In this document: one piece after another, positions 1,142 through 56,094 of the stretch
Numbering within the stretch: position 1 is the stretch's first letter
Layout: every line of letters begins with the position of its first letter
Translations under genes and position numbers: made by a program
Assembly (NCBI GenBank): GCA_009103225.1
Contig: RHPI01000193.1
Location: 688,386-752,385, forward strand
Length of the DNA stretch: 64,000 nucleotides
Direction of reading: 5' to 3'
DNA from: Chlorokybus atmophyticus
Lineage: Eukaryota > Plantae > Mesostigma and Chlorokybus algae
Notes under the pieces: model-generated
Databases searched by the model: none
What the model was told of the DNA's origin: nothing
What the model saw: only the letters and a program-made list of their open reading frames with translations

Positions 1142-2218
1142 GACGACCACACGCACCCCACTGACTCACACCACCACCCACACCACCGCCGCGGCTGCGG
1201 CCGCCGCCAGGCCGCCAGGCGTTTTCTATATTTAGCGCACGCACGTGCTGCATCGGTACGGTACCAGCACAGGTGCGCCGGGTTCGGTACTCGTACTGCT
1301 CTCAACCTGGGACCCCAAGTTGGGGTCCCACCCCTACTGCTGGTAATAATAATTCATGAGTCATGAGTCATGTATCCTGCGCGGTATTCATGACTGGTAT
1401 GACTGTAACAAGCATCATGAATGTTACCGTTTTGTTGCCGCGTATCGTGCGCGCCGGATGTAGCGCGCTGACGCATCTCCCCTCTACCGCGTCGATAAAT
1501 ACGGATATATATACGGAAATCGTCAAACCCGCGGCTGTCATGATTCAACAGGAGAGTGTGCGTAACACCCTACCAACGTTAGAAACAACCTTTGTTGGGG
1601 TCAGTCCCATGTGCTGTTCCCCAAGTTTGGGGACCCGATCTGGACACGTGGTGGGCTCCGCCATTATACTCTGCCTGTTGTTGTGTTGTGGGCTAGGCTG
1701 CTATCATGCCTATCAGATCAGTGCAGCAAGCGTGTGTGTGACTTAGCTTGTCAGCGAGCTCCTGTTATTTACACTTCTCGCTGCTTGCTGTAGCACTGTA
1801 GTTGTGTGACCTTTTCTCTTGTGGTTTGGTGTGTTGTGTGTGCTTGCGCCTGTGTGATTGTGTGCGGGTGCGTGATACTAGTTGGTGTATCTGCGAGAGG
1901 GGCGACTGAAGCGAAGCCAAGGGGAGGAACATTAGCGGCTGTGTGCATGCGTGCATGCAACTAGCTTGTTTGGGCCAAGCAAAGGAAGGCAAGTTAAGGA
2001 GGAGCAGGGAGGACCTGTGGAGCGTGGTGTTGTTGTTCTGGGTTTGACTTGGACTTGCCCTGAGAACTGGTAAGTGACAGTTTCACAACAGTTGTCTCCC
2101 ACTTCATCATCATCTCAACAACACACATCCACCCATCCACACCCAAGCCCACCCATCCACCCCACCCACACCCTTCGACATGTGCAGAGAGTCACACATA
2201 ACCGCGCAATCCAACACA

Positions 2219-5091
2219 ATGAAGAAGGAGTCCTTCTTCCGTCTCAAGTACTGGCCTCGTCTAGGCTCCCTGCGCGACCTCACGGGACCCAACAAGATCC
2301 GGACCATCTTGTCCGAGTTCATCTGCACGCTCATACTGGGTAAGAGATACGTAAGGGAGTATATATGTGTGTTTACGTGTGTACATGTGCTCATGCATGT
2401 GTGCGCAATTGTGCAGATGTGAGTTTATGCAAACGCGCACGCGCACCCAGACGCACATACACACGCGTGTGACACCGATACACATGCTGTCTACATGTCA
2501 CACACAGCATGTCTGCATGCGCGTGGGTATGCACACATTTCGTGTTGTGTTTTTTACTTGCAAAGTAGTCCTGACTCACCCTTTCTTCATCAGTCTTCTT
2601 CGGTACGGGTGCTGTTGTTGCCACGGGTCTCCCCGAGTTCCATGGCAACGGCGCTGGTTCGGGCGCATTGCCTGCCGTGATCGATCCCGCGCGCACCGTT
2701 GCCATCGCTCTCGCTTTCGGCCTGGTGAGTGTATGTTGGGGTGTTTAATACAGCGTGTTGGCTTGTTGTGTCGGCACAACAACCCAACATTTTTCGTTAT
2801 AGTTGTACACTGCCACACACCACAGCTTGCGCTGCATGCGGCACACTTACAAGCATACATTGGCAGGTGCTCGTGTGTTTGGTTGCCATGACTTCGAGTG
2901 TGTCGGGAGGATGCCACGCCAACCCTTCTGTCACCCTAGCATTCTTGATATTAGGTAGTGTGCACAATTGATTGCAGTTGAACTGTGACTTGCTAGCTCA
3001 ACCAATGACTCAACATGTGGGTGCAGGGTACATGCCGGTGTTGCAGGCGATAGGCTACGTGCTCGCGCAGCTTGGTGGTGCCTTGTGTGCGTCGCTGTTG
3101 CTTAAAGCGTCCACACGTTCAGAGGTGCACATGCTTGGTTACATGCGTGTGTGCATCTGTCTGTACGTACATATGGGCATGTGTGGCTGGCCTCATGCGT
3201 GTCTGCGTATGAACACGCGTACATCCAAGGCATGTGGGTCTTTGTACATGCACAAGTGCATATGCATGTGCGTACAGGATATGCTGCCAGTAGTTGTAGA
3301 CACGCATGACATCACTCACAGCATGCCAAACAGCATGCAAGCACCTCCCCGTCAAACATGCATACATGCGTATGTGTGTACCTCGCGCCTCTGTTGGCAC
3401 GTTCAAGTGCAAATGGAACTTGTGTGAACATGCGATATGCGGTATGCTTACATATGTTGGCATGTATGTGCCTTTGCATTTGATTACTTTGTCTGCGCCC
3501 TTGCACATTTTTGTGTGCCTGTGTGCATATGTGTGTTGCATTCAGCTTGTGCCACTTCTGCCGAGTGAAACGTTCGAACATTGCCCTGTCTCACTCATCT
3601 CCTTCCTCCTTTCAGTGGCGGCAATCCCTTGGCGCTAACAGCGTCCACGCGGGACTGAGCGCCTGGAACGCGTTCGAGGTTGAAGCCATCGTCACGTTCT
3701 TCTTCGTGCTTGGTAAGATACAAAGTTGTGGTTATTGGTGTGATGCTGTCTATAATTGCAAATTGGGGATGAGTGCATCAGAGCCATATGCACAGACACG
3801 CACGCACGCACGCACGCACACACAAGCATACACCCTGATGCATACGCACTCTCACGCTCACACTCGCATTTCATTCACACGCACACTCCTGCACTGTCAC
3901 GAACACGTTCTCACACTCTTGCACTTCCACTCCCTCAGTTTTCTCAGTGTCAAACAATCTCCCCCACACCAACACCCACACCCTCACTCACTCACTCACT
4001 CACTGACCCCTTCTCCCCTCTGATCCGCAGTCATTCTTGGCACGGCCTGCGCCCCGACGGACCGCAACCAGCGCGCTCTCGCCCCCGTCCCGATCGGCTT
4101 CGCGCTCGCGGTTGGAAATCTTGTGCTGATTGCCTTCGATGGGGCGAGCATCAACCCCGCACGCAGCTTCGGGCCGGCGGTGGTGGCGGACAAATGGTCG
4201 AATCACTGGGTGAGTGTGTGTGTGTGTGTATGTGGATGTGCGTACGCACATGTGTGGGTGTGCATGTGTACACTCTGAGATCCTGCTGATTTGGTAATTC
4301 GTGGAGGAGCCAGGCGCTTATGCACATGCGTGTGTTGGCATGCCATGGGCAGTGCACTGTCCGTGCTTGCGTGCGTGTACGCCTGTGCACATGTATTTGA
4401 GTGTGCGTGTGTGTGGGTGTATAATACAGTATGCAAGGATGCAAGGATTGTGTTTGTATGTCCGCGTGCATGCACAAGTGTACATCAAATGCAGGACATG
4501 CATGTGTGTATGATACAGATAATCACTTTATTGGAGCAGCGTCGCGCACATTCCAATTCATTCATCGACACTAGCTCAATTATGATTACATGGCTTCACT
4601 TGAGCAACACTTTACAGTCACTGACCAACCTCTTGTTGCCCTGACAGGTGTTTTGGGCTGGGCCGTTGTTGGGTTCGTGCTTGGCGTCGCTCGTGCACGC
4701 GTTCGTGATGACTCCCTCGCACGCGAAAGGCACCCTCAACATGGACTCTGCATCGGTGAGTCAGCAATACACTCTGTGTTTGGTGCACAATCACACGACC
4801 TTCGCGCGTCCACATCTCTGTGGTTGTGCATACACATGCGCACGCACGCACGCACGTGCAGGTTACTTACATGCTGTCTGTTCTTTGTCACAGGCACCTC
4901 CGGTAACGGATGAAAAGAGGCAATCCGTTGAAGAGGGTAGACCCAACAACAACAACACCACCACCAACAACAACAATATCTACGCTGTTGGAGCTTACAC
5001 AGCTGAAGGGCTGCATCGACCTCCCGCAGGACCGCCTCCGCGCAAAGGTGGCTTGCTTGGACACACTGTTGGGACGGACATCAACGTGTAG
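2219..5091 (+). CDS. Aquaporin / major intrinsic protein, copy 1 (8 coding exons, apparently intact; NPS-NPA)
   Basis: Spliced product MKKESFFRLKYWPRLGSLRDLTGPNKIRTILSEFICTLIL..IALAFGL..SGGCHANPSVT..YVLAQLGGALCASLLL..LGANAVH..AFEVEAIVTFFFV..IGFALAVGNLVLIAFDGASINPARSFGPAV..HWVFWAGPLLG..GTDINV*. All donors and acceptors are GT-AG. A putative 5'UTR intron donor lies at 2070. Confidence 0.92.
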
Positions 5092-5545
5092 ATGATGTGT
5101 TGGCATTCGCGGGTATGCATGTGTAAATAGTGTGCATACATATGTTGGCGTGCAGGCGGGAGCAGTTGCTTGTTGTAGTTAGTGCAGGTCTTTACAGGCA
5201 TTGCACGCAAGGCAGTTGTCTTCATGTTGTAAAGTGCATAGGCGAAACAAGCAGACTATAGTTGCTTTGTAGAGAACTTTGTAGACAAATTGTCGTCATT
5301 TACTCTGTTGGTGCGCATTTTGTTACTGTGTAAGATGTTGTATGCTGTTGCTACAGCATCCTGTACCTAAGGTGTAATTATGCAAGCTGAAACCAGTAAG
5401 CATTTTCAATACATATCACAACACTACGTCAGCTTCATGCAGAACAAACCTCTCGCAAACAATACATCGCGTGCGCACAAACCCCAATCAACATAGTGAA
5501 CTAAATTAGTTCACTAGTTCAGTTGCGAACATGAACTAAAATAGT

Positions 5546-7353
5546 CATACCTCTTTGGTAGGAACCAGGGTTATGCTAGTGTAAGAGGAGCATCCAGTAG
5601 CCTTTGAGAGTTTCAAGTATAAGCCCGCGGCGAAGAATTACTCGACCACCTATCACGAATTATCAGGTGTTGTGAAAGCGTTGCATAGATGGAGGTATTA
5701 CTTAGAGGGGAGGCATTTTAAGGTGATAACTGATCACAACCCCTTAGTGCACCTAAATACGCAACCTAATTTGTAGCGACGCCAAGTAAGGTGGCATGAG
5801 TATTTGATGCGATATGATTTTGATTGGGAATATAGGCCAGGTAGGAAAAAGGCGGCAGATCCTTTAAGTAGGCATCCCGCATTATCCGAGGATTTGGCGT
5901 TACTTGCATTGGATTATGTGAGTGACATTCCTAACCAAATAATCGCAAGTTATACTAATTGCCCGGAGTTCCTTTTGGAATTCAACCAAGTGTTAAAACC
6001 ACATGGGGCATTTTGGTATAAAGATGAAGAAAAGATTGCGGTTCCAATGAATGGGTCACCTAGGTCAAAGGTGATTGAAGAATCACATAATCCCCCTTAC
6101 CATGGCCATTTTGGTATAAGGAAAACTACCGAGCTTTTGGCTAGGAGGTATTGGTGGCCGACCTTAAGAATTGATGTCGAAAGCTTTGTAAAGAATTGTG
6201 ACTCATGCCAAAGGAATAAATCCGTAAGGATAAAACCGGCCGGAAAATTACAACCTTTGCCCATACCAGAGGGGGCTTAGAAGTCTATGTCTGTTGACTT
6301 CATAGTCCAATTACCTAAAACGGTAAAAGGGAATAACGAAATGGTTGTATTTGTAGACCGGTTTAGTAAGGTTGTTCACTTAGAACCAACTCCTCCAAAA
6401 TTTACGGGCGAGGATTTGCCCATGCCTTTTTCAGGATATGGTACTCACAACATGGGATGCCCGTGGATATGATTTCGGATAGGGATTCGCGGTTCACTTC
6501 CGCCTTTTGGCGTGAAGTATGTGATACATTAAATTGAGATAATAAGTTATCCACCGCGTTTCATCCTCAACCAGATGGGCAAACCGAGCATGTGAATCAG
6601 ACAGTGGAACAACTATTGAGGCATTACTCACTAAAGAATATTAGAGATTGGGATACATATCTCCCTTTCGTTGAGTATGCCATCAATGATTCGGTGAATG
6701 AGTCAACGGGGATGACACCATTTGATATTGGTTATGGCCGCCATTTATTAAGTCCAGTTGAGGCTTTAATGGAGAATATGGGGGCTAGAAAAAGAGTCAA
6801 CCCCTCGACTCAAATTTTGGCTCAACGATTAGGGCAGGTGCAAAATGAGGCCAAGAGGGCCTTATTAGCAACCCAAAATCGTATGCGTCAATATGCCGAT
6901 GCCAAGAGGGCAGAGGCCGTGTTTGAAGTGGGACAAGAAGTCCTACTTAGCACAAAGAATGTGAGGATGGAGTTTCTCGATGGGGCCCGAAAACTATTAC
7001 CCCGATGGCTTGGACCATTTAAGGTAATAGAAAAGATAGGGGCTATGGCATTCAAGTTAGAATTGCCACCGAGTCTTAAGATACATAATGTATTTCATGC
7101 CTCGCTATTGAGAACCTATCACTCAGATGGGTCGGTGCAGCCACCACCACCCCCAATGTTTATAGAAGGAGATTGGGAGTATGAAGTTGAGGGTATAATA
7201 ACCCACAAAGGCCGGAAAGGCAGATCTCCCAGTTACTTTGTGAAATGGAAGGGTCATCCGTTCGAAGCATGTGAATGGGTTGACGAACCTAACATGCGAT
7301 CACCGCTTCTGATAAAGAAATATTGGAGGGAGCTAACGGTTGCCCAAAGATGA
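5546..7353 (+). mobile_element. 5'-truncated, decayed Ty3/gypsy (chromovirus) pol: RNase H, integrase, chromodomain
   Basis: RNase H HPVAFES..NYSTTYHELSGVVKALHRWRYYLEG..VITDHNPL; integrase zinc finger SHNPPYHGHFG..CDSCQR; core SMSVDFIVQLP..FVDRFSK..HPQPDGQTE; GPF(K) motif; chromodomain EYEVEGII..YFVKWKGHP..EW. Several in-frame stops and frameshifts. Confidence 0.93.
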
Positions 7354-8006: not shown

Positions 8007-8335
8007 AATCAACATAGTGAACTAAATTAGTTCACTAGTTCAGTTGCGAACATGAACTAAAATAGTTCACTGAATCAATTACGAACATGAACTAAACTAG
8101 TTCACTAGGGGTTCGTAAGTGAACTAAAATAGTTCACTGATTCAGTTACGAACATGAACTAAAATAGTTCACTAGGGGTTCGTAAATGGACTAAGAGAAT
8201 CACCCTAATATGAGGGGACTAATAGTTGGGAGAGCCAAAAGTGAATCACTGGTGAACTAAAGTAGTTCACTAGTAAAGTGATTCATAAAGCCGACAAGGT
8301 AGTGAACTAAAGTTGATTCACTAGTGAATCAACTA
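8007..8335. repeat. Array of 17-bp palindromes TGAACTA-AAN-TAGTTCA, about 35-bp period
   Basis: Motif starts at 8018, 8053, 8088, 8120, 8155 and 8253. Positions 8007-8066 are identical to 5486-5545. Confidence 0.88.
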
Positions 8336-8840
8336 TTAGATCACTTCGCGAGTCCTGCTGGTCAATTGCATGTGGTGCCGAACAAAGACCCGAGCTGACT
8401 GTGTGCGACCGTGTGGACGCAGGTGATTTGACAACATGCATGCTTGTATGGCTAACGGGGGCGGGTAGTAGTGTAGAAGATGTAGTGGCTAGCCCGGTGG
8501 TCAAGTTGAATAAAGGTTAGTTGCGGATGCACTTGCATGCGTTATGCATGACACCCTATGCATGCGGACTACCTAGCATACTATCTCTTGTACACATCGT
8601 GGCCTTCAGTTGTGGTTATGTGTGGGGTGGGGTTTGGGGAATGGTTGAGAATGTGGGTGTATTAGTATGTATGGACGTGACATGTGCAATGCTTGCAATA
8701 TATGCCACCCGCAGCCACTACTTTGGCAAACAGGTGGCGATTGGTGTACATGCCATGTGCGCTTCTGAGAGGATTGTGTGCATACAGAGTAGAACGGATT
8801 GCGTGTGTATACATATCTGTTTATGGTCATATAAACGTAT

Positions 8841-9784
8841 CGGATACGATGCAGTTTACAATGGATAGATCTGTGGCATGTACTGTTGCATCAACTTGAA
8901 AGGTTTGATTGCCCTGGACCCTGACGTTCAATGTGTAACATATATGCAATGTTATGCATGTGACCCCATTGTGTTGTTTGCTGAATGACTTGGCTGTTTC
9001 GTGAGCATGCAAGTTAGCCTTTGGTTAGGAAACAGACCCCAATGAGGTAAAACAGCCAACAACCTGTGAAATTGACACATCAGCTCTGGCGTAACTCATG
9101 ATCAGCAGGTTTTCATCATTGCAGATTGCAAAACCGCCCCGTCGCATTGCTCCGCGTAAGAAGAACGGTATGCTGAGTACGCAGTCTGCGTAACTGCCGA
9201 ACAACTGCTTAGCCTCATGGAGAACTGATGCGGTCATTGAGGGTTGTGTAAACAGTACTTGTGAGCTCACCTGATGAACTTGTAACTGAGTTAGACACGC
9301 ATACATCGCCGGCGTTGAACGGCGCAGTTGTGTTCGCCCAGCTCTGACAATGTGAGTGCGTGTGTAAGCGCGCATGCATCTGTGTGCATGCGTGCGTGCG
9401 TGCGCACACGTACATGTCCGTGCTTATGTCTGTGCTCATTGCAACGAGCACTTGTCTGTGTACACCTGCACGCGCATGCACATGTGTGTGTGCGTGCGCA
9501 TGTGCGTCTGCGTGGCTGACAACCATTCCCTCCCATAACAAGTTGAAGCAAGGACTTTGCACCACGCGCCATCAACACATCTGGTACTGCTCGTGGTCTG
9601 GTTCTGGGTTCATGACTGCGGAGGGAGGTGCCTAGCCAGCGTCATCCGGCCTCGGGCCGGTAGAGGTCGGCAACCTCTACCACCCAAGCAGCCGCGCCGG
9701 CAGGGTGCAGCAGGAGAAGCAAGCTCACCGCTGTCGTTGTGAGCACAGCACTGCTGCAGCTGCTTGATGGAGACGCTGCTTCAT
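8841..9784 (-). pseudogene. Phytocyanin pseudogene (paralog of 16032-17351)
   Basis: Recognisable exons: LTTTAVSLLLLLHPAGAAA (2-nt insertion after ATG, stop), SWANTTAPFNAGD, HTVLLTRSNATGRFCNLQ*, VQGNQTFQVDATVHATDLSIVNCIVS (1 nt shorter than its paralog exon). Donors read AT instead of GT at about 9580, 9099 and 8840. The last exon was not found. Confidence 0.8.
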
Positions 9785-11646
9785 GGCTGCGGAGAAGGTC
9801 GCAACAAGCAATGAGACAGAGAGACTGCGCGAGCAGTGTGTGCGTTATGCCTGCACAAATATGCATGCATGTGCAGAGGGAGGCCAAGTGTAGATGTCAT
9901 GACTGGTCTGACACGATTGCTGAGCTGGTGTAGGCCTTAACCCAGCGCAAGCCAGAGTGATAGCCTGTTCACTGTTACGGTCTGTCGCTTGGCTCGGACT
10001 GTGTCGGACACAAAGCGTATGCTTGTTGACTACTTGCATTGCGCTTGCAAATGCACAAGGAGCCAAGTACACATCGAGTGGTCGACTTGACTGCACGTAA
10101 GCAACCTTGCTTGCAATCTCAACACACAAACAGCGTCGTTTTTGTGTTGCAGTGCACTGCCTGCACAAGAAGCAAACAAGAAACCAAGCGTCAACCATGC
10201 TTGCGACCTGGAAACCACACGCATGCATGCGCTTCTCAGCAGTTTTGGTCAGCGAGAACTATCCGGCACCTGCATGGCTGCAAGCTGGCACCCAACGCAA
10301 CGCAGTGCTTCGCAGACTGCCCTGACTCAAGCCACAGAGTGCACCAAGCAAGCAAGCTAGCACCTCACCTCGACCTGATCCTTCGTCTTTGCCTCCCGCA
10401 GAATCGTCACCACCTGCCGCCTAATGATTCCAAGCCAAGCTAAGCTCAGCTTAAGCTTAGCGAAAGAGCGAAGCGCAGGTCACCTAAGCTAAGGCATTAA
10501 GGCACTGAACGTATGCGTTTCAGGCAGTTGATGCTGTCATGTAGCAAGTTGACGCGCGCGCAAAGCGCATTAAAATACTGATTGCGCTTATTCATTGCGC
10601 GCGCAAAGCGCTTGCGTTAAGTGCCTTGATTGGTTTGAAACCTCCGCACAGTCACACAGTCTCTCGACTCAGCTTTGCCATAGCTGCCAGTGGCTTTGAC
10701 ATGGGTTCGCGATGGGTGAGTGGAGAGAGTGTCTCCACGCCTTGCAGGCGGTTGGTCGGCTTGATTGGTCTGAAAGCTCAACTCAGCACAGCTCGACTCA
10801 CCTCAGCAAAGTTTGCCTTTTCAAGCATAGCTGAGGCAATGCAGTGCCATACTTGCGAGTGGCTTGTAGAACATGGTTGTTCATTGGATGACTGGAGACA
10901 ATGCCCAAGTCTTGAAGGCGGCTAGTGCTCGGCTTTGCCGAAGTCGACAGAAAACAAGGAGGTTGAGGTGAGCTTAAGCTACAGCCCCTCAGCTGAGCTG
11001 GCTCAAGTTTCACATATGTTCAGCAAAGCTTTACAGAAGCATTCATGCATGCGCCTGGAAAACTGTCGCTCAAGCAGCGTTACAAGCAGTGTAGCAAGCT
11101 TGTGTAGGCAGCGCGCTTGAAAGCAAACAGCACTAATGCTAACCGTGCAAGCCATTTCGCCAGCGTTCCTTATGCGTTTGGTGCAGTTTGTTACTGCGTG
11201 CGCATAGATTCAGCGAGTGGTGTCCACAGTCTGTCGTTGTGCAGCTCTTTGCACTAGTGTAGTCTTGGTGTGTTGTATGTGTTTTGCCGGTGTGTATATC
11301 TTAGCGCATGTGTGTGATAAAATTGTGCGTATCACTGGTTCGTGTCTGGCGAGGGGTAAATGAAGCGCAAGGGAACACCAGGAGCTGTGTGGATGTGTGC
11401 ACGGGTGCATGCAACTAGCTTTGATTGAGACAAACAGAGGGAAAGCAAGCTACGCAGGTGGAAGAAGGAGGATCTAGTGGATTGGTGTTGGGCTGGGGTT
11501 TATCTTTCTCAATGAATTGCCCTGAGCTCTGGCAAGTAGTGTTCTACAGTGGTTGTTTCAACTCTTTCTTCCCACCGACAACCACACACCCATGGCCACA
11601 CACCCATGGCCGCGCCCACACTCAACCAACATTCCTTGTGCAGAGA

Positions 11647-13881
11647 ATGACAAATACACAGTCCAACGCAGTGAAGGTCTGGTCCTTCCGGCTTAAGTAC
11701 CGGCCGCGCCTGGGCTCCGTGCGCGGCGACGTCTTTGGCCCCAACAAGATCCGCACCATCATCTCTGAGTACATATCCACTCTCATACTGGGTGAGAGAG
11801 TATGTATGTGTCTATGTGTATGCGTGTTCAATGGTAAGATCATGCGCACACGCATACGGCTGCAGTGCATGCGCATGCACTGTGTGTGCACGTGTATGTA
11901 TATATACGCACGTGTCTACGTGTGCGAGTGTGTCGTGCACACGGATGCACACTTTGTGGGTGTCACACTGAGCACGTGTGCATGCATGTGTGCGCACATG
12001 CTGGTGCATCTTGTTCACTCAGTAAACTTCGCCTGACTCGCATGTTCTTCTCCAGTCTTTGTCGGTACGGGTGCTGTGGTCGCGACGGGTATCCCTGCGT
12101 TCCATGGCAGCGGCGCGGGTGCGGATGCATTGCCTGCCGTGATTGATCCCGCGCGCACCGTCGCCATAGCTCTTGCCTTCGGCCTGGTGAGTGCATGTTG
12201 GGTGATGGCAGAGGATCATGTTGGTTAGTGTCGTGCCGACAGAACCAAGGAAAGCAATCGCAGGTGCTCGTGTGTTTGGTCGCCATGACTTCAAGCGTGT
12301 CGGGCGGATGCCACGCCAATCCTGCTGTCACCACCGCGTTCTTGATATTGGGTAATGTGTACAACTTGATTGTCGGTACCGATGATACGCTACCTCTCAA
12401 GCGCATCCCCAAAGTATGTTCCTCTGTTGCAGGGTACATGCCGGTGATACAGGCAATATGTTACGTGCTCGCGCAGCTTGGGGGAGCCCTTTGTGCGTCG
12501 CTCCTGCTCAAAGCATCCGTACGCTCGCAGGTGTGCATGTGTGCGTGTGTGCATGCGTGTAAACAATTGTGGGCATCTGCGCGCACATATGCACATGTGC
12601 ATGTGCCAAGTAAGGTTTCTCTTCTCTTTCAGTGGCGCCAATCGCTTGGTGCCAACGCCGTCCATGCGGGACTGAGCGCCTGGAACGCGTTCGAGGTCGA
12701 GGCCATCGTTACGTTCTTTTTCGTGCTTGGTAAGAGATACAAGCGACAGCAGTTTGCCAAATCACGCGGCGTGATGCATAATCAATGCTAATTAGTTTCA
12801 AGGCAAGAAGTGTATCCGTAACCCACGCACGCACACGCACAAGTATGCACACTCACACCCTCACGCATACACTCTCACACTCTCACACTTACCGTGACAC
12901 AAACACAGACACACACACACACACACACACTCGCACTCGCTGTTGTTATGTTCCAGTCATCCTGGGCACCGCGTGCGCTCCCACCGACCGCAACCAGCGC
13001 GCCCTGGCCCCCGTCCCGATCGGCTTCGCGCTCGCAGTTGGAAACCTTGTACTGATTGCCTATGACGGGGCAAGCATCAACCCCGCCCGCAGCTTTGGAC
13101 CAGCCGTGGTGGCAGATAAGTGGGCCGATCACTGGGTAAGTTGGGGTGTGGGTATGTGTGCGTGTGCGTGTGCGTGTTGGCTCGCGCGTGTGCTCGTGCG
13201 TCCAGTTTGTGGATTTGTCCGTGCACCACGCACATGCAGGGTGTCGACAACAGTTAGCGACACACTAGCCTATGTGTTGTGGAATGACTTTAACTTGCTT
13301 GCTCACGCAAGACTGCACTTACAAACACTCTGTTTGAATTTTGGTCACTGGTACAATCACTGGTAAGACAATTACTGATTGGCTCTCGTTGCTCTTAAAG
13401 GTGTTCTGGTGCGGCCCGTTGTTGGGTGCCTGTTTGGCCTCGCTCGTGCACGCTTTTGTCATGACTCCCTCGCACGTGAAAGGCACCGTTGACATGCCCT
13501 CAGCACAGGTGCGAAAGTAGCGACACTCCGTATTCAACAACCAACATACAACACAGTCACAGGCTCACACCTCTGTGGCTGTCTTGATGCATGCACGCTT
13601 ACTGTGTGAGCGTGTGCGCTTGCGCGTGCAGGTGTGTGTACCAAGTGGCGTGCATACGTATCAAATGTTGTTTACACTTCTAACTACAGGGACCTCCAGT
13701 ACAAGACGATAAACAGAAGTCGCTTGAAGAGGGTACACCCAACAACAGCGACAACGACATGAAAAAACCCAACAATGTTGGGGCTCATACGGCGGAAGGG
13801 CTGCATCGTCCTCCTATGCAAACGCAGCCGCGCAAGCAGGGCTTTCTTGGATACACTGTCGGGACGGACATCAACGTATAG
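11647..13881 (+). CDS. Aquaporin / MIP, copy 2 (8 coding exons, intact; NPA-NPA)
   Basis: MTNTQSNAVKVWSFRLKYRPRLGSVRGDVFGPNKIRTIISEY..VFVGTGAVVATG..IALAFGL|VLVCLVAMTSSVSGGCHANPAVT..GASINPARSFGPAVVADKWADHW|VFWCGPLLG..GTDINV* (TAG 13879-81). Frame is kept across all GT-AG introns. Confidence 0.92.
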
Positions 13882-16031
13882 ATAGTGTGGGTGATGCGGG
13901 TATGTATGTGTAAATAGTGTGTCTTGATTTGCGGGCAGGAGCAGCTGAAGGCTGCTGTAAGTAGTGCACATTTGTGTTGATGATAGGGAAAGATGAAGAC
14001 ACTGGGGGGGAAACAGAGCGAGTAACTGCTTCACAAACCGTTTGTTGTTGAGTTGCTATCAGTCTAGTTTGGTTCAGTACTGTCACATATGAAATGGTAG
14101 TGAAAGCAGAATTATCCCAATTTAGTCTGCTTTCGTGATGGGTAAACCAGCATGACGTCAACGCTTGTGTAAGACCGCATACAACCTCCTCAGACAAAGC
14201 ACTGGAGTCCAAGTGTGTCCTGCGTTTTGTGCACATTGCGATAATCTTAAAAGGTGTATGACAGTTGCCTTTATACGACATGCTGGCTTGCAGCAATGGC
14301 ACCGTGAGTTGAACTCTCACATGATGGTTGTCACTGCCATCACGTTTTGCCAAATACTGTATGGTACGCAGGCAATCAAACCGCTGTAGCGTAGGAAACC
14401 AGCCACTCGTCGCTATTTCTTCAAACTGTAAATACACATGTACATGGTACAAAGGTCGTATGCCACTTATACCGCATGCATGTCACACAAGGCGTACGGA
14501 GGTTATAATTTGCAAGAATTTTGTACGTAAGCAATTCATACGGGCATGTCTGCACAGGATCAACTGCATGCAGCCAGCGACACGCACCTGCTTGCTGCAT
14601 ACAGGTCCACCGGGCTGAGTTTACCCTCTACCCTACCTCTACTCCTACCGGCCCCTAGCCATGCATGCATGCATTCACAGCAGTCCTTGTAACTTGCAAG
14701 ATATGTACGAAAGAGTTGACTAGAGTGCTGCATATGCTGCAGCTGTGTAGCGTGCTATGCTGCTCTACCTCACACACGGTCATGCACCCACACCCACGCC
14801 AGTATCGACGACGGCAGTTGTGACGATGGCGGAGGGTGGGAGAGCGGTGGCGGGGGGGGTCTCTGCTGGTCGTCGGTGTGGTCGTCGACGTGGTCCTGTT
14901 GAAGACCGATGCTGCTGGTGGTGTGACAGGTAATTGAGTCTGCCTGCATGCAGAGCTAACGGGGTACGAGCTGTAGTGAAGGCAGGTAGCTAGGTTTGTA
15001 TAGATAGCCCGGTGGTAATCAAGATTTTGTTAGTCAGTATGTGGATGGCTGGTGCATGTGTCGTGTGTGTATATAAGGGGTATGGTACGGTGTGTAACAT
15101 ATATGCAATGTTATGCATGTGACCCCATTGCATTGTGAACATGACATGCACAGTGTGTTGGTCACATGCACAGCATTGCATATATCATGCACATCACGCA
15201 CATCGCAGCGCACGCACACCACAAACGCCTCAGCACCACGTCCCCCGTCACGTGCAGCGTCACGCCGTCATCCTCATCATCAGGAAGCCGCCCTTCCGTC
15301 CATTCATAAGAAGCAAACGCATTTGAAGTCGCAGCAATGCAAACAGTCCTTCTTGCATCTTTTGTACACTTCATGCATATTGACAATTCAACTGAACGCA
15401 ACTCGCACACTGCGCGCATGGCCGATGCGCGCAGTGTGCACGCATGCCGCATGCGTGCACAAACTAGCACACTCGATTGTTGTACAGATATTCACTTGCA
15501 TACATCCTAGATGCCTTAAACCTTGTACCTACGCACGCACATTTGCATGTAGGCTATAAGCCTTGAGCCTTCTGATAATGCTGATGTTGATGGTGGCATG
15601 CTGTGATTGTTGGCAATGATGGTAAATTGCATGCATGTTATGTGCAAGCATGAGACAATGAACTGCACATATGCAACGCCATGCTAGCATGCGTAGCTGC
15701 CTACCCAATACACAAACACACACCCACTTATATGTATACGCAAGTGTACAGGGTTGGGTTGCCAGTATGGTGCCGGCAGTACCGCTACTATACCTGGTCA
15801 CGCACGCCATACCGTCCCACAGGCACTCACACAGCTATACGGTCTCTTGCACATAGCCACAGCTCCGCACTACACACCGCACACACGGGCACTCACAGTC
15901 CTCTCCCCCCTCCCCCACCCACTTGGATGCATCTTTTGTAGACACTTTCGCACATACTGAACCATCCTAGCTGACAGCCTAAAAGGATGTTTATGGCGAA
16001 GTTCTTTGGTCAGCCCGGACCGGAGTAGAAG

Positions 16032-17351
16032 TTACTTTCCGTGCTTGCCATATCCGTGACCGGAACTAGCAGGAATGGGAGGAGCGCGTGCGGGACCTAG
16101 AGCAGGGGCAGGACCGTGACCAATCTGTGGCGGGAGGACGATGAACCAGAAGCGCAAGCCGGCGGGGCAGTGTCCTGCATATAGAGAGAAAGGTGGTGTT
16201 GTTAAGTTTCAGCTAGTTTCAGCTGTTAGATGCAATACTCATGGTGTAATTACAGCTGCGTGCGCGTGTCCTGACACAAGAGAGATGCATGTAGCACCTC
16301 ATGTCTTTTTTACGCATGCAACACGCATGAAAGAGTACAAGAACCTTGATAACAAACAGGACCGGCACTGCTCAGCAGAGGCAGCATGTGTGTGCGTATG
16401 ACTGCGCTATAACACAAGCGTACCTGGCACAATGCATGTTACATTCCATTGGCCTCTTGCGGGTACAGTCCAGTTGAACTGGAAGGGACTGGTGGCCTGG
16501 GATCCTGTCATTGAGCGTGTGTTTGGTATTTGGTTGGCTAAATGTCTCAGCAATAGCATGAGAACATGCACTATGTGTGTCGGAAAAGAGACACAATCAG
16601 CTGGATAGTTGAATCCTTGTGGTTTTGAGAAATCACAACTACGCCAGGATTTGATTACCAAAACTATACTCACCGTTCAGCAGGTTGCCATTTCCAGCAT
16701 TGCAAAACTCCTGCACCGTTGCATTGCTTTGGGCAAGGAAAACGGTATGCGGGATACCTTATGAACACAAGGGTTTGTAAGCGAACAAATGCCTAGCGTC
16801 ATGCAGATGTTGAGAATCTAGACACAGCACTTGCCAATTACTCAGTGTGCACAGTGTGCTTTTACCTGGTGGTTGGTAGTTGAACACAAATATGTCGCCA
16901 ACGTTGAACGAACCATTCGTATTCGCCCAAGTCTGCCATTGTCAGTACATGTGGATGAGCACATGCTTCTGCGTGCTCGCACGCGCGTGTGCACACCGTT
17001 TGTACGCGCGTGCGCACACCTTTTGTTGTTGTGCGGGTGCTTGTAAATGTGGATTTCTGCGTGCATGCGTGTGTGTGGGGGGGCATGTGCATGCGTGCTT
17101 ATGTGTATATGCGTCTGCGTGCCTGCAACCACTGCCCACCATGACAAGTTGCAAAAAGCAACTTTTATCATGCGCCATCAACACACCTGGTAGTCTGGTT
17201 CAGGGTTGATGAGTGCCCAGCCAGAATTGTCCGGACCGACGACCACCACCCGAGCAGCCGCGCCGGGAGGATGCATCAACAGGAGAAAGAGGCTCACTAC
17301 TGTCGTTGTGAGCACAGCAAGGCCGCAGCCAAGCAATGGAGACTGCTTCAT
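16032..17351 (-). CDS. Secreted phytocyanin (plastocyanin-like Cu-binding domain), 179 aa, 5 exons
   Basis: Exons 17351-17187, 16932-16866, 16757-16674, 16504-16424 and 16174-16032 are all GT-AG and in frame: MKQSPLLGCGLAVLTTTVVSLFLLLMHPPGAAARVVVVGPDNSGWALINPEPDYQTWANTNGSFNVGDIFVFNYQPPGIPHTVFLAQSNATVQEFCNAGNGNLLNGSQATSPFQFNWTVPARGQWNVTCIVPGHCPAGLRFWFIVLPPQIGHGPAPALGPARAPPIPASSGHGYGKHGK*. Shows a signal peptide, the VG..GW, WA..F.VGD..VF.Y and H.V motifs, and C-x4-HC-x3-L. Confidence 0.9.
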
Positions 17352-19259
17352 GGCTGCGGAGAAGGTGGCAACAAACAGTCGGACAGGAACAGAGACACAC
17401 AGACTACGGGCGTTGTGTGCGTAGTGCACGCACACCTGCATGCATGCCAAGGGAGCCAAGTTTACATGTTATAACACGCTTGCGGAGCAGCCAGCTAGTG
17501 TTTCCAGCTAGGCTAGCAGCTACTTCGATGGCGGCATTTGCTGTGGGATGTTGCTAGCTAGCAGTCGTACTGCTGTAAACCTTGTCGCAAGGCGGGGTCC
17601 CCAGTCCAGAGCAGGGTAACAGCGTGCTCAATGGCACGTCTTTGGCTTGGCTCAGACACAAAGCATACTGTTGATGACCACTCGCAGTTACACAAGGAAA
17701 CAGGCCTGTCTCCATGTCACAAGTGAAGCTGCCTTGCCACGGTAGCAAGGCAGCTTAACTTGCAAGCTTAACACACAACCAGCGTTACTGGACATTGTGT
17801 GCTTTCACGTGCACAAGGAAGGTTTGCACAAGGAACCATAACTGCAACAATGGTTGCGACCTGGAGACCTAGAGGCACATGCATGCATGGATGCGCTGGT
17901 CAGCAACTTTGCTTAGATAAGGGGAAGGCAGCTAAGGATCTGCGAGCTGGCACCAATGCAACGAGTGCTTGACAGACTGCAGCTGAAGCCACATGCGACA
18001 TCGCAAGCAAGCTCACCTGATTTTCCTTCTCTGCCGCGCCCCCAAAACAGTCGCTACCTGCCGCCTCCTTCACCTAAAGCTCAGCTTAGCTCAGCGCTGA
18101 GCTAGCTTGAACGACAGTGCAAGCAGCATGCATTTAAGGCACCGAATGCATGCATTTAGACTGTTAACTCTATCGTCTTAACAACCTTAGCGCGCTCGTA
18201 AATCGCCTGCATTAAGTGCCCTAGTTGATGTGAAAGCTACAGTCACCACAGTTCTGTGCTCAGCTTTGCTGTGCTTTGCCCTTACTTGCCAGTGACCTTG
18301 ACGTGAGTCTGCGATGGGTCTCGCCTTGGAGGCGGCTGCGCTGGCTTCCTTGATTGATGTGAAAGCTCAACTCAGCACAGCTGGACGCAGCTTTGCTTTG
18401 GCATACTTGCCAGTGCCAGTGGCTGTGACGTGGAACAGGGTGAGCGGAGCATGTGTGTGTTCACGCCTTGGAAGCGGCTGGTGCTGTTTTCTTGAGATTG
18501 GCAGAGAATATGAAGCTTGAGGCGAGCAGTCAATTGGGCTTGAGCCACAGACCCTACAGCTGTCTGGTTGCCGGCTCAGATCGCACTCAGCGAAGCTGCA
18601 CAGAAGCATGCATGCATGCGCTTGGCAAGTATTCGCTCAAGATGCTGCGTTACAACCAGTGTTGCAAGATTGTGTCGGCAGCGTCCTACACTGCAAACAG
18701 CATTAATGCTGTCCGTATATGCGTGCAAGCCACGCTAGCGTTCCTAACGCGCTTTGTGCAGAGCTGCCAGTGTGTTACTGCGTGTGCCTAGGCAATGCGA
18801 GTGGTGTAATTAGGCTGTAGTTGTGTATGCTTTTCCTTGTACGTTGTGTGTGGCTTGCACGTGTGTGGTTTTGCGCATGTGCGAGAGATATAAGTTCTGC
18901 ATGCTATTAGTGGGTGTCTGGTGGCAAGAGGGGTACCTAAAGCTAAAAGGGGAATACTAGAGGCTGCATTTATGGATGCATGCGTGCATACAAGTAGCTT
19001 GTTGGGACATACAGAGGGTAAGCTAAATAGGAGGAAAGAACAGAGGGAGGATCTGTTGTGTTTGTGTCAGGTTGGGTTTCAACTTGGAATAATCCTGAGC
19101 TTTGGTAAGTAATGTTTCTACAGTGGTTGTCTCACCTGTTCCCACCCCCCAAAAACACGCACAAAACATTTACATGGACGCTGACATCCATGCCCACGCC
19201 CACGCGCGCGTGCACACGTTCCTTGTGCAGATAGTGACACGAACATACAGTCCAACGCA

Positions 19260-21835
19260 ATGAAGAAGGAGTCCTTCTTCCGGCTCAAGTACTGGCCGCG
19301 CCTGGGCTCCGTGCGCGGCGATCTCTCGGGCCCCAACAAGATCCGCACCATCATCTCTGAGTTCATGTGCACCCTCATACTGGGTAAGAGATATATGTGG
19401 GTGCGTGCCTGCGTGTGTGCGTGTGTGCATGTGTGAGTTCATGCAAGCACGCGCACATTTGGCTGCGGGTGCACTGTGTGTGCCACATATACTGTGTGCG
19501 CGTATGCATGTGAGTGCTTGACACGTACACGCTGTGTCGTGTCACAAGGAGCATGTGTGCATGCGTGTGTGCACGCGCACACATGCTGGTGTCTTGTTTG
19601 CTCACTCGAGTTCTGCAAACTCACATGCCAATCTCCAGTCCTTTTCGGCACGGGAGCTGTCATTGCAACGGGTCTTCCCGCATCCCATGGCAGCGGCGCT
19701 GGCACGGACGCCTTGCCTGCCGTGATCGATGCCGCGCGCACTGTTGCCATTTCTCTCTCCTTTGGCCTGGTGAGTGCACACATGTTGATAACAGGGAAAC
19801 CTTCCCTATGTTCCCTGACTATGTTGAACGTAGTTGGACTATGTTGGTTTGTCGCGCCGACACAATCAACCAGTGCAATGGCAAGCTCTCACTTGTTTGG
19901 TCGCCATGGCTTCAAGCGTGTCAGGCGGATGCCACGCCAATCCTGCTGTCACCACCGCATTCTTTATGTCGGTTGTACAATTTGGTTGTCGGTGTTGATG
20001 ATACGCTATCTGTCAAGCATTCAGCACATCCCCAACATATGTTTCTCTATTTGCAGGGTACGTACCAGTGATACAGGCGGTAGAATACGTGCTCGCGCAG
20101 CTTCGGGGAGCCCTGTGTGCATCGCTCCTGCCCAAAGCAGCCGTACGCGCGCCGGTGTGCATGTGTGTAGATGTGATTGTGGGCATCTGCGCGCGCATAT
20201 GCATACATGTGCGTGTATGTACGTGTTTGTACGTGTATACGCATGCGTTCACGCATAGGCATGCACATGCGCATGTGTGCCTGTCGTATGCCTAAGTGTG
20301 CGCACTTACACGCACATGTGTCTGTGTGTGCTCACTTGCACGCATATGTGCATCTGTACACGCCTGCGAGCCTGCCTACCTGTCTGTGTGTGCTTGTGAG
20401 TGCATGTGTGTGTCTGCTCACTTTCGTGCATGCACATGTACATGCCTGTATCACAATCGGCTAATCCAAGCAAGATAGTGGCCCTCTGTCTCAACTACCT
20501 CACGTCCCTCCTATTTCAGTGGCGGCAATCCCTTGGAGCCAACGCTGTCCACGGCGGACTGAGCGCCTGGAACGCGTTTGAGGTCGAAACCGTCGTCGCA
20601 TTCTTTACCGTGCTTGGTAAGGAGTAGGGAATCTTGTTTTGTGCTGCCAAGTGCAAGGCGCTGTATATTTGATGCACATGTACGCACACGCACACATACG
20701 CAGTCACACTTAAACTCCCATAAACACACACTTTCACACTCACACGCACAATCTACAAGAGTGTAAGCGTGAGCCATCTTACCTGCACGCACACTGTTAA
20801 CAGTGATAATGCAGGTCATGCACGCACGATTTTACTCTTTCAGACTTGTTATCTCTGTCTCTTAGTATTTCTCTCACTTACTCGCAAACACACATTTGCA
20901 CACTGTGGCATGCGTACATGCGCACACTCACGCACACACTCACACACACTAGTCATCCTCGGCACCGCGTGCGCTCCCACCGACCGCCACCAGAGCGCCT
21001 TGGCTCCGGTCTCGATCGGCTTTGCGCTCGCGGCGGGAAATCTCTTACTGATCGCCTTTGATGGCGCCAGCATCACTCCCCGCGCGAAGCTTTGGACCGG
21101 CCGTGGTGGCGGACATGTGGGCACATTACTGGGTGAGTGGGAAGGGTAGGTATGTGTCCGTGTGCATGTCAAAGCTCAGATGGTGCAGCCAGTCTGCAGC
21201 CTGCAGCGCACACGCACAGCGTGCGTGTATGCGCATGTAAATGCGAGCGTGTGTGCGCGTGTGTGTGTGGGCACATGTGTGTGCACACTCGCTTATCACT
21301 TGTACACCAATTCACTGAGCAGTCACCTGATCACTTACTTGGCTCTTGTTGCTTTGACAGGTGTTCTGGAGTGGGCCGTTGTTGGGTTCGTGTTTGGCCT
21401 CTCTCGTGTACGCGTTCATGACGACTCCCTCGCACGCCAGAGGCACCATCGACATGGGCGCCACAAAGATGAGATAACAAGGCAACCTTTGGTTGCGTAA
21501 CCAGAACATTCTCACGTGTTCACATCTCTGTGGTTGTGCACAGGTATAAGTGCACAGGCATGCACATGTGCACGCGGCACAAATGTGCGTCTGGGCGCAT
21601 GTGCATGTTGTGTGCATGTCGTGCAACAGATGTTGCTTACAATATGTTTACTGCAGGCACCTCCGATTGACAAAAAGGGCAGTCGATAGAAGAGGGCACA
21701 CCCACCAATGGCAACAACAACAGTCACGCTGAGGTTTATCACACGGCTGAAGGGTTGCACCGTGTTGCGGCCGGGTCGCAGCCGCGCAAACAGGGCTTGC
21801 TTGGATGCACTGTCGTGACAAACATCAATGTGTAG
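19260..21835 (+). pseudogene. Aquaporin / MIP copy 3, pseudogene
   Basis: Colinear with copies 1 and 2. A 1-nt insertion destroys the second NPA (atc actcccc gcg cga, about 21073-21085), the splice sites of the first-NPA exon are degraded (about 19880-19975), and the exon-7 donor reads AT (21469). Confidence 0.85.
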
Positions 21836-24717
21836 ATCGTGTGTTGTTTTCTGTGCGGGTTTGCATCTGTAAATAGTGTATACATGTGGTGGCTTGCAGT
21901 CAGGAGCAGCTGAAGGTTGTTGTAGTTTTCAGATCTTCAGAGTATAATCGTGTGCAGAAGGAAAATAAGAACATGGAAGTTGCTTAGTAGACACGTTAAT
22001 ACAATACTATTAATAGTCTGTTTTAGACACTGTCCCAGTTACGTGGAGTGTAATGTGGTGATAACTTGATGCCAGCATAGGTTGCTGCATGATGGGAGAC
22101 GAGTATGACATTACAATTCATAAGCTCGCATGTAACTTGCCACACACAGCATTGCAAGATATCATGACTTTCCGACAACATGTATGTAGTACTACTACAT
22201 AATATGCATGTATGTAGCATGCGGCTATCGGTTGGGTACTCTAATAATATCTCCATAATGTGGGTACTCTATTAATATCTCCATAATATCTCCATCTAAT
22301 AATGTGCTTCGCAGTTTGTTCTTGTCATTGAAGCTTCTCATAAACTGCTTAAACTGTCCGCTGCCCATAGCTACTAGCTGAAGCATTGCTATTTATCAAC
22401 CTGAGGCTACCTAAGGGTCTTAGCTCCAAGTCCTAGCGGTCTTAATTGAAGGGTCTGACTTCAAAATGGTCGTAAGTATTCCCATGCGCGCGGTGCTTAC
22501 CTTTGCCTTGGCCCCGTAACTCATGCTTATCGTTGTGCATGCTTGCATGGCTTAATACTATCATGATCATGATTGGCTATGCCTACAATACAATATTCTA
22601 AGATGCCATCATTTCGTTTGCGCACAAAGCCAGAACCCAATAGTTTATGTTGCAGTAAAAACCAATGCTGTTCACTACAACTTAAGAATGTAACTCTTAC
22701 TCGAATCTGATACAGCAGGCTGTAACCACTCCGTCGTACAAGTTGCGCATTTATATGCAACCATCCCCATCTAAAAAGCCAGCTATGTAAGCAAGTTCAC
22801 TCTCCTTAATTATATTCATATTTATTTTACTAATCTTCCCTCGGTATTACTATTTGGCTTTTTTATTCTTAAATGTCAAATCTTTCAAATGCAATGCAAC
22901 GCATTTAATAAGACTCGGCAATTATGAATCGTCAATTGTGCCGTGCGTTTGAAGCACTGAAATTGCAATTATTGCTGTAAATTACAATAATCACTTGTAG
23001 CATAATAACGAATGCATCCACCGTTCCTAACCAATCTGAAACGTTTTGTATATTGTAGATAAGCAACTCGTATTCTTTTGTTGTTACTTAAATCAACATG
23101 TATTGAGTGTTTACGAGAAATAATGATGCAATGACAATTGATTGCAGTTTATACAAATAATAATATCACAATACGGGATGGATATACCCTTATGATACAT
23201 AATTGCATGTAACACGCAATTGTTGTGCAGGTTTCCATATTAAATTGCGTCAACAACGACGTTATTACAACTACAATAAAACAAACATGCAGCACTTACA
23301 ATTTGTGAATATCAAAAGGATGATTATTGATAATAAGAGCAAGTACAATATCTAATTTAACAGCATACTCATAGGTATATTGTAACATATCAATGTGTAA
23401 AAAGGTGCGTTATGGTTCATGAAAAGAAAATGTCAATTTGGTACATGCTGTAAAGTGTCCTGCAAGTGTATGACCAACACGAGTTATGTATTATAACAGT
23501 ATACATATGCTTTGATTCACGCGCGGCCGAAACAATAACACATCACATTTCTTCAGTTGAAGGATTTATGTCGTTTTCCTCGCTACTATTGCTGAATACG
23601 CCTTGTCTACCATCAAATACTGAACATACTTGAACATTGGACACATTTCACACACAAATAATCATGAAACACACATTTCACACTCATTGTTGGTAGCTTT
23701 TCAGCTTATAGCCTTCCTCAGTGGTACTGCCGCGTGCATCATGCGATCGCAGGCGCAGACTCTGCGGTATAACGCGGTTCAAACGCGTATCACGCTGTTC
23801 GTTACAAATCTGTTCCGTCCTCGACACCGTTTGGTCGACGCGGCAATCCGCGTGCGCTTGTAAGTATAGGCCCAACGGGTGGGTCGTGCTGATCCGCAAA
23901 GTCTAGACCGGGTGTTGCTTGTTGACCCGGAAGCAGGGCGGGAAGATAACTGTGCCACTCGCAGCACGATGTGCGTTGACTCGACACCGACGACGCTCGT
24001 CCTCATCAGCTTGCGTCCCGTCGTCAGTGTCTATACCACTGCGCCCCTTGTCGTTACGCACAGAGGATCCACCGTGGCGGTGCTGGCGCTCAGCGCGTCA
24101 GGTCAATAGCTGCCACGGAGGCGGTCTTATCGACACGCGTAACCGGCTGCAGTCAGGTCGGTTGAGTTCTTGGCACCGGCTTTGGACAGCCGATTCCGCC
24201 TGTGTGCAGGCAGAAAGCGTCTGAGGACCTGCCTCTGACCATAGGCACGCTTGTAAGACCCAGAGCCCACGTCACCGTGACTGAGCACCAACCTCGGTTA
24301 GCGGACGCACGCGCGGAGGCAACCGACGCTTCGCGGCAGCACAGTTATACGCGTGCTGGTGGCTTTTTGGGTATCAACTGTATTGGCGCGGCGCCTCTTT
24401 TGGTATGAGCCCCTTTTGGTATGAGGGGGCCCTTTTTGTTACCAGGCGGCCCCCTTATGACGCCTAACGTCGTCAGCGAACGTGTCTAACCGGGTTCGGT
24501 CAGAAACAAACCACAAGGGGCCGCGAGCATACGACACAGCGGCATGCGTTGCAGTCATGGATGAGTATGCCGATGTGGCAAAGGTGGCAAGGGGCGAGAC
24601 GCACTCCCATCTCATGCTCATCCGCATTCTGGGCGGAGAGGATCGGCACGCAGTTGACGAACGTTAGTTTCTTAGCTAGGGGCGCAGCGCACTTGGCTCA
24701 CAGGCTCCGCATGGCTC

Positions 24718-38953: not shown

Positions 38954-39637
38954 CCAAGTCCGCATGATTGGAGGCTCTATTTACCCTTGTATAGTTTTGC
39001 TGGTTGCTTGTGCATCGCTTCTTGCATTCCCTACTTTGTGTACAATAGTGTGTTTGTGCTGTGCTGCAGCTGGCAGCTTTAAAAGTGCGGCGATTTGGCT
39101 TTAAAATGTCAGATTGCCTTACCGTTGGCTATGTTGACATGTTGATTAACCGCTGCAGCTATGATGGTGATTCGTGTTAATGCAGCGCAGTTGCTTTGAC
39201 CAACTTGGAATGTCACTTGAGGCCATCAACCACTGTAATTGATACAGAATATTCTCTACTGTCAGTGAGTTGGCTTCCAGAAGAACCAGCCGAGATCATT
39301 GTACACCAAAGGGCAGTCGCAAGACTATGCAATTGCACTGCGCGTAGTGGGAAAGGCACAGCATATCGACCTCATCACGCAACATCATAAGTGAAGCCGT
39401 CCACCAGCTACATGCTTACGACAGGTACCACCACTGCATCCAGCAGGCATTGACAACTGCTAGCACATGCGTGTGCATGTGTCTTGGATCAGCAAAACAC
39501 TGCATCAACTGTAGTGTCCGGAAAGAAGTATCTGGCATTGCTGGCAGCCAACTGGAATGACACTAGCCATGTACACCAACAAAGATGCATACAATAACTA
39601 AAGATGTACAACGGATACAATCACCATAAGAGCGTGC

Positions 39638-41954: not shown

Positions 41955-41972
41955 TATGATGTAAAGCACAAT

Positions 41973-42540
<568 letters not shown>

Positions 42541-50050: not shown

Positions 50051-50067
50051 GATGTTGGGGTATAGAC

Positions 50068-50120
<53 letters not shown>

Positions 50121-56001: not shown

Positions 56002-56015
56002 CATGATGCACAAGG

Positions 56016-56094
<79 letters not shown>

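Follow-up and report, generated by a model that had tools for sequence, protein, structure and literature searches.

A locus of Chlorokybus atmophyticus within the window, the 64,000-nucleotide stretch of contig RHPI01000193.1 that was analysed, consists of five genes derived from two local duplications, three of them tandem aquaporins and two phytocyanin-like. Its present coding content is two working aquaporins (A0 and A1) and one working phytocyanin-like protein (P2), function being the probable state of these three intact genes. The other two members, a phytocyanin-like gene (P1) and an aquaporin (A2), are pseudogenes. We consider it likely that the locus is a small tandem array that arose through local segmental duplication in two rounds, redundant copies being lost in the ordinary way after each.

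The initial annotation of this DNA described two homologous phytocyanin-aquaporin units in tandem, and the blastn comparison bears it out. Positions 10597-12604 match 18192-20216 (E-value reported as 0.0), 12955-13171 match 20951-21169 (E-value = 2e-58) and 9289-9903 match 16878-17475 (E-value = 7e-44), a homology far beyond chance that is collinear and includes the introns and the spacer. It is well supported for unit 1 at 8932..13959 and for unit 2 at 15091..21937. The proposed start of the stretch at 8440 is poorly founded, the homology to the left of 8932 being weak (E-value = 0.017). In each unit a minus-strand phytocyanin-like gene diverges head-to-head from a plus-strand MIP/aquaporin gene, with the start codons exactly where they had been placed, at 9784 and 11647 in unit 1 and at 17351 and 19260 in unit 2. 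The aquaporin exons of the two units are 83% identical, and their non-coding DNA 63-67%. Forty identical bases (8932-8971 and 15091-15130) form an island inside otherwise unalignable flanks, which simple duplication does not explain. A hairpin is present at 15089-15196. A third aquaporin copy, absent from the earlier two-unit description, lies upstream (homology 1796-5192).

The phytocyanin-like gene of unit 2, P2 (16032..17351, minus strand), gives an open, canonically spliced model of five exons (17351-17187, 16932-16866, 16757-16674, 16504-16424 and 16174-16032) coding for 179 aa, in agreement with the claim that this unit kept its phytocyanin. The N-terminus encoded by exon 1 is hydrophobic, and an Ala-rich stretch comes next. 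The Pfam and PDB queries were single exons. Exon 2 alone (22 aa) exhibits a weak match to positions 11-30 of the Cu_bind_like profile (PF02298; E-value = 0.0035), and its 17.8 bits, against a cut-off of 20.8, are a score for that exon and not for the joined protein. The sole PDB match of exon 2 is mavicyanin, a weak one (E-value = 1.2); exons 1, 3, 4 and 5, searched one by one, returned noise only. Like phytocyanins (PF02298; mavicyanin 1ws7), P2 begins with a hydrophobic leader, and its exon 2 carries the motif Trp-Ala...Val-Gly-Asp...Phe-Asn-Tyr. The putative copper ligands read from the gene model are His81, Cys129 and His134, with the C-x4-H-x4-axial spacing of the family. Phytocyanins carry two conserved disulfide-bridged cysteines (PMC4499708); in P2 a pair compared by eye with the family pattern, Cys96 after the first His and Cys135 adjoining the second, occupies the disulfide positions. 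Unlike phytocyanins, in which the axial ligand is Met or Gln, P2 exhibits Leu139 at this position, and its Gly/His/Lys-rich tail is not an AGP or GPI region.

Its counterpart in unit 1, P1 (9094..9784, minus strand), is dead, as had been recognised. The lesions were read by alignment. The ATG at 9784 is retained, and a 2-nt insertion at 9776-9775 (+2 frameshift) puts a stop in frame at 9727-9725, so that 19 codons are read. Further on, a conserved Trp codon is changed from TGG to TAG (9634-9632) and the exon-1 donor from GT to AT (9580-9579). Exon 2 is degenerate though open, the exon-3 remnant (9223-9094) contains indels and has lost both splice sites, and exons 4-5 are missing through a deletion of more than 1 kb. 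The identity of the P1 exons, 77%, is about the level expected under neutrality from the start.

The aquaporin of unit 1, A1 (11647..13881, plus strand), was indeed kept: its eight coding exons (11647-11791, 12056-12186, 12264-12351, 12433-12530, 12633-12729, 12957-13135, 13401-13508 and 13690-13881) form an open, canonically spliced model of 345 aa. Stretches containing these exons match the Pfam MIP profile (PF00230) with E-values of 7e-14, 4e-17 and 2e-15 (52.5, 63.1 and 57.8 bits; the cut-off is 25), and both NPA boxes of the family are present (NPA/NPA). The ATG at 11647 is not homologous with that of A2. The ancestral start codon is a GTG in A1 (11671), a new in-frame ATG eight codons upstream is used, and the donor of the 5'UTR intron is GC; these changes at the 5' end might have reduced or altered the expression of A1. 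A search of the sequence collection with the stretch holding exons 3-5 returned no match, and with the exon-6 part as query the matches were confined to nine MIPs, of which the best shared 58% identity across the exon. A1 and A0 are 42-43% identical over about 238 residues to P0001 and P0002, the closest MIPs retrieved, with which they share the MIP domain and the NPA boxes. Unlike these, they exhibit an extra residue (Cys) ahead of the first NPA box, a longer loop A and a C-terminal tail of about 63-65 aa, which has no Pfam match and is encoded by an eighth exon conserved across all three aquaporin copies; in A0, moreover, the first box is NPS.

In unit 2 the aquaporin A2 (19260..21835, plus strand) had been reported as dead, and at least five lesions confirm it. 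In exon 3 the acceptor is changed from AG to AA, and a deletion of 5 bp has removed the donor. The second NPA box is destroyed by one inserted nucleotide at 21076 (+1 frameshift), which falls within it. At exon 7 the donor reads AT in place of GT, and exon 8 lacks 4 nt. Pieces of A2 score about 20-21 bits against the Pfam MIP profile (cut-off 25). Since P1 and A2 retain introns, they are duplicated copies and not retrocopies. Both combine the introns and flanks of the parent with disabling lesions, as unprocessed pseudogenes do.

The third copy, A0 (2219..5091, plus strand), is an intact MIP/aquaporin paralogue: its eight coding exons have canonical splice sites, and the reading frame of 339 aa is free of internal stops. 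The first box reads NPS, the second NPA. The homology of A0 with A1 and A2 is confined to 1796-5192, so that no more than about 420 bp ahead of the ATG are shared. A tblastn search with P2 upstream of A0 revealed no phytocyanin partner or remnant. An intact aquaporin that has no phytocyanin neighbour and shares only these 420 bp argues that the aquaporin needs neither the pair nor the distal spacer. The Ka/Ks ratio between A0 and A1 is 0.13, thus both are under purifying selection. The stretches that follow A0, A1 and A2 exhibit no homology with each other past the common 100 bp or so. Between A0 and the P1 remnant lies a fragment of a Ty3/gypsy chromovirus (5804..7353, plus strand) with an integrase zinc-binding domain (Integrase_H2C2, E-value = 4e-22), SH3_Tf2-1 (2e-19) and a chromodomain (Chromo, 3e-10); it accounts for the wider A0-A1 spacing and for the low G+C content at 6-8 kb. 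Local duplication is common in the window, as a further three-copy tandem array at 39-56 kb shows.

Synonymous divergence is lowest between A1 and A2 (Ks = 0.42, compared with 0.59 for A0-A1 and 0.57 for A0-A2). In 1155 aligned non-coding columns, private changes number 248 in A0, 146 in A1 and 171 in A2 (p = 3e-7 and 2e-4). Under a clock, which gene conversion could distort and which has to be assumed for a tree unrooted at silent sites (the nearest proteins being 42-43% identical), these values would place the split of A0 first and the duplication of the phytocyanin-aquaporin unit later, in the order A0 then (A1, A2). The pseudogene A2 carries 38 private amino-acid changes, compared with 11-12 in A0 and A1, and exactly as many third-position changes as A1 (31 each), which fits a constraint relaxed part-way. 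The losses seem to differ in age: A2 would have remained constrained for about two thirds of the time since the duplication, and P1 appears to have been neutral from early on.

These observations can be arranged in a putative history. The first copying would have taken in an aquaporin together with flanking sequence, about 420 bp upstream and about 100 bp on the 3' side, giving rise to A0 and to the ancestor of A1 and A2, the latter sitting head-to-head with a phytocyanin-like gene. Later, a segment of about 6.9 kb comprising the phytocyanin gene, the spacer of about 1.9 kb and the aquaporin would have been duplicated in tandem. The extra phytocyanin P1 would then have decayed early, losing its 3' half, and the third aquaporin A2 would have been constrained for some time and decayed afterwards. 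A retrotransposon fragment lies between A0 and P1. The claim of the initial annotation that a two-gene unit was duplicated and that one copy of each gene was then lost in opposite units is supported.

That annotation went further and viewed the phytocyanin and the aquaporin as a co-regulated cell-surface module with a shared bidirectional regulatory region, complementary decay having left each survivor with its own copy. Both units do retain the head-to-head orientation and a similar distance between the start codons (1863 bp for P1-A1, 1909 bp for P2-A2). Spacer 1 (9785..11646, 1862 bp) and spacer 2 (17352..19259, 1908 bp) can be aligned from end to end, with a few blocks at 76-80% identity. 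The intergenic DNA described as conserved is 67% identical; however, this level is close to that of the introns (63-64%) and equal to that of the 3' flank (67%), and the best block, with 78 of 97 positions identical, exceeds the mean of the 21 windows compared by no more than about 2.7 SD. The aquaporin-proximal part of spacer 1, about 420 bp from position 11231, is common to A0 and contains a 5'UTR exon and a 5'UTR intron of about 115 nt. Spacer 1 exhibits no coding-like conservation. A hidden gene or RNA in the spacer was considered and rejected, with no significant Pfam match, no Rfam family, and tblastx matches containing stops and frame changes. Random neighbouring gene pairs are head-to-head in one quarter of cases, and if one copy of each gene is lost at random, the losses are expected to fall in opposite units half the time (a prior of 1/2). 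Bidirectional pairs are usually limited to less than 1 kb between transcription start sites, and most plant bidirectional promoters span 100-300 bp (PMC4035068), although experiments in plants are reported to have shown bidirectional promoters of 1.26 and 1.43 kb (PMC3834115, PMC6274729). The distances given here are measured between start codons and not start sites; when the aquaporin 5'UTR exon and intron are subtracted, at least about 1.4 kb is left, still above the usual limit. The intact A0, with no partner and without all but about 420 bp of the spacer, also argues against the module, which we regard as very unlikely. Very unlikely too, in our judgement, is the related proposal that the two genes form a real functional pair, acting for example at the cell surface in copper redox or in the handling of peroxide, and that shared elements of the 1.9 kb spacer drive their divergent transcription. 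Under that proposal the two genes would have been duplicated and then resolved jointly, A0 being a regulatory escapee with a different expression pattern. As far as the sequence goes, a shared promoter or co-regulated module is unsupported; we infer that regulatory coupling of the two genes is absent, and the head-to-head arrangement is most likely an incidental gene order. Among the papers searched, none joins Chlorokybus and phytocyanin, nor does any tie Chlorokybus aquaporins to this locus.

Two further readings concern the origin of the copies and the reality of the lesions. The array might have begun as three full phytocyanin-spacer-aquaporin units, A0 later losing its phytocyanin and the distal spacer by deletion. 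All three copies share a 3' boundary 80-100 bp past the stop, as would fit repeated unequal crossing-over of one unit, but the 650 bp between the start of the A0 homology (1796) and the neighbouring gene (1-1141) bear no trace of a phytocyanin or distal spacer, A0 is the most diverged copy, and one more event is required; we find this reading unlikely. It is extremely improbable that errors of assembly or sequencing account for the lesions and that none of the five genes is damaged. Some indels (+1 at 21076, +2 at 9776-9775) are of typical error kinds; yet each pseudogene carries at least five independent lesions of mixed kinds, among them splice-site substitutions, a nonsense codon and the deletion of more than 1 kb, and private amino-acid changes are threefold higher in A2. 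The two-step duplication with subsequent loss remains our preferred history.

This locus exhibits neither a new kind of cassette nor a new mechanism, and reflects ordinary gene-family turnover. It provides curated models, from an early-diverging streptophyte alga, of three divergent MIP genes and one phytocyanin-like gene, with P1 and A2, both of which automatic annotation could mis-call, flagged as pseudogenes. It is also a small, clean case in which losses in opposite units have made a two-gene segment single-copy again. The co-regulation idea is cheaply testable, A0, under selection with an upstream region of only about 420 bp, being a natural promoter-truncation control.

Compared with known plant bidirectional gene pairs (PMC4035068), the phytocyanin and the aquaporin are likewise divergent and head-to-head; in contrast to such pairs, their start codons are 1.86-1.91 kb apart and an intact aquaporin paralogue stands without a phytocyanin partner. 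The closer parallel is tandem and segmental duplication, by which phytocyanin families mainly expand, followed by non-functionalisation (PMC4499708). As in plant gene families, the copies are collinear, intron-containing and in direct orientation, the redundant ones have been disabled by frameshifts, nonsense codons and the loss of splice sites, and the survivors are under purifying selection. Unlike the typical case, the duplicated unit here consists of two unrelated genes with losses in opposite units, and three aquaporin copies are present, as an earlier and shorter duplication came before the two-gene one.

The window is eukaryotic in character, with spliced genes and a G+C content of about 50%. 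A blastn self-comparison bears out the two homologous tandem units, each with a minus-strand phytocyanin-like gene head-to-head with a plus-strand aquaporin gene: P1 and A1 in unit 1 (8932-13959), P2 and A2 in unit 2 (15091-21937). Collinear matches link 9289-13959 to 16878-21924 at offsets of 7.6-8.0 kb (E-value = 7e-44 and 2e-58, the third given as 0.0). The whole-window self-comparison also reveals a third homologous aquaporin segment at 1796-5192 (A0), absent from the initial annotation. Tandem duplications are frequent across this region, since a second, unrelated three-copy tandem array lies at 39311-42064, 47505-50104 and 53430-56106 (66-79% identity). A truncated Ty3/gypsy chromovirus (5804-7353; integrase H2C2, SH3_Tf2-1 and chromodomain) takes up a large share of the interval from A0 to P1; beyond it the DNA is A+T-rich and contains 2.6 copies of a 67-nt unit repeated in tandem (8018-8194). 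At 25300-26330, just downstream of a low-G+C stretch (22-24 kb), ORF pieces read as a putative ATP-dependent PEP carboxykinase, with the context of a Gly-Thr-Gly-Lys-Thr P-loop.

A1 exhibits seven canonical coding exons from position 11647, plus an eighth at 13690-13881; this eight-exon model is open and gives a product of 345 aa. As the exon-7 donor sits just ahead of an in-frame stop, short and long isoforms may both be possible. A0 (2219-5091) shares this architecture, open with canonical splice sites, and encodes 339 aa with 81% identity to the A1 protein. The exons match the Pfam MIP family well above the cut-off, and the closest proteins retrieved show just 42-43% identity. The eighth exon is conserved in all three copies (4894-5091 in A0, 21657-21835 in A2). 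It encodes a C-terminal tail of 63-65 aa that has no match in Pfam, and of which the last heptapeptide is identical in A0 and A1. A short 5'UTR intron is also common to the three copies, with an invariant acceptor and a donor that is GT in A0 and A2, and GC in A1. In A1 the start codon that A0 and A2 have in common reads GTG (11671), and a new in-frame ATG at 11647, eight codons upstream and four bases past the intron acceptor, provides a substitute start (region 11512-11680). The Ka/Ks ratio between A0 and A1 is 0.13, and both are therefore under purifying selection.

P2 consists of five canonical minus-strand exons (17351-16032) encoding 179 aa. Its assignment to the phytocyanins rests on one short exon match and on motifs read from the gene model, the database searches having been run exon by exon. 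Exon 2 alone matches Pfam Cu_bind_like (E-value = 0.0035), and its sole PDB match is mavicyanin, a phytocyanin. The model places His81, Cys129 and His134 at the family spacing, Leu139 rather than Met or Gln in the axial position and Cys96/Cys135 in the disulfide positions; features of this kind define phytocyanins (PMC4499708).

The other member of each unit is a pseudogene. P1 keeps its ATG at 9784, and a 2-nt insertion at 9776-9775 leads to a stop after 19 codons. The codon for the conserved Trp (9634-9632) now reads TAG instead of TGG, and the exon-1 donor AT instead of GT. What remains of exon 3 (9223-9094) carries indels and lacks both splice sites, and no trace of exons 4-5 was found. 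In A2, exon 3 lacks both its splice sites and exon 7 its donor, the second NPA box is interrupted by a 1-nt insertion (21076), and 4 nt are deleted from exon 8. At least five independent lesions of differing kinds per pseudogene cannot credibly be ascribed to sequencing error. Duplication followed by reciprocal decay, as initially proposed, is real, but ordinary.

A near-perfect hairpin of about 108 nt (15089-15196) lies some 850 nt beyond the end of the P2 coding sequence. Its predicted folding energy is -61 kcal/mol (z = -4.5), and none of 200 shuffled sequences was as stable. A 40-base part of one arm is repeated with no mismatch at 8932-8971 (region 8932-8977), next to the P1 remnant, with both flanks unalignable and the surrounding duplicated DNA only about 65% identical. 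The hairpin exhibits only generic, sub-threshold matches to miRNA hairpin families and no complementarity to the phytocyanin or aquaporin genes. Possible identities are a MITE remnant, a precursor of small RNAs, and filler copied at the junction of the deletion that took away P1 exons 4-5.

Silent-site divergence is 0.42 between A1 and A2, 0.59 between A0 and A1, and 0.57 between A0 and A2. Private changes in 1155 aligned non-coding columns number 248 in A0, 146 in A1 and 171 in A2, the A0 excess being significant (p = 3e-7 and 2e-4). Therefore, assuming a clock, A0 split first and the paired unit was duplicated later. A2 has 38 private amino-acid changes versus 11-12 in A0 and A1, with as many third-position changes as A1; a rough calculation puts its unconstrained phase at about a third of the period since the duplication. 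P1 is 77% identical to its counterpart in exons versus 64% in introns, about what would be expected under neutrality from the start. On these figures, the decay of P1 and that of A2 appear to have been separate events of different age.

It had also been proposed that the ancestral pair shared a bidirectional regulatory region and formed a co-regulated module. Head-to-head orientation is expected by chance in one of four adjacent gene pairs, and random loss of one copy per gene places the losses in opposite units half the time. Identity between the units in the spacer separating the two start codons (67%) is like that of the introns (63-64%) and the 3' flank (67%); its most conserved block of 100 columns (80%) does not reach significance once the 21 windows are accounted for. 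None of the ORFs in the spacer matches Pfam, its conservation is not coding-like, and it has no match in Rfam. Homology of A0 to the other copies reaches just about 420 bp beyond its ATG on the upstream side and ends about 100 bp past the stop codon, as in A1 and A2, and no phytocyanin remnant was found upstream. The intact A0 shows that an aquaporin copy lacking both the phytocyanin partner and the distal 1.4 kb of the spacer can stay under selection. The proposal is thus unsupported; co-regulation would not be disproved by these sequence comparisons, yet nothing was found in its favour. The spacing points the same way: the start codons lie 1.86-1.91 kb apart, whereas the usual definition of a bidirectional pair sets a limit of less than 1 kb from one transcription start site to the other, and most plant bidirectional promoters span 100-300 bp (PMC4035068). 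Longer working bidirectional promoters, of 1.26-1.43 kb, are known in plants (PMC3834115, PMC6274729).
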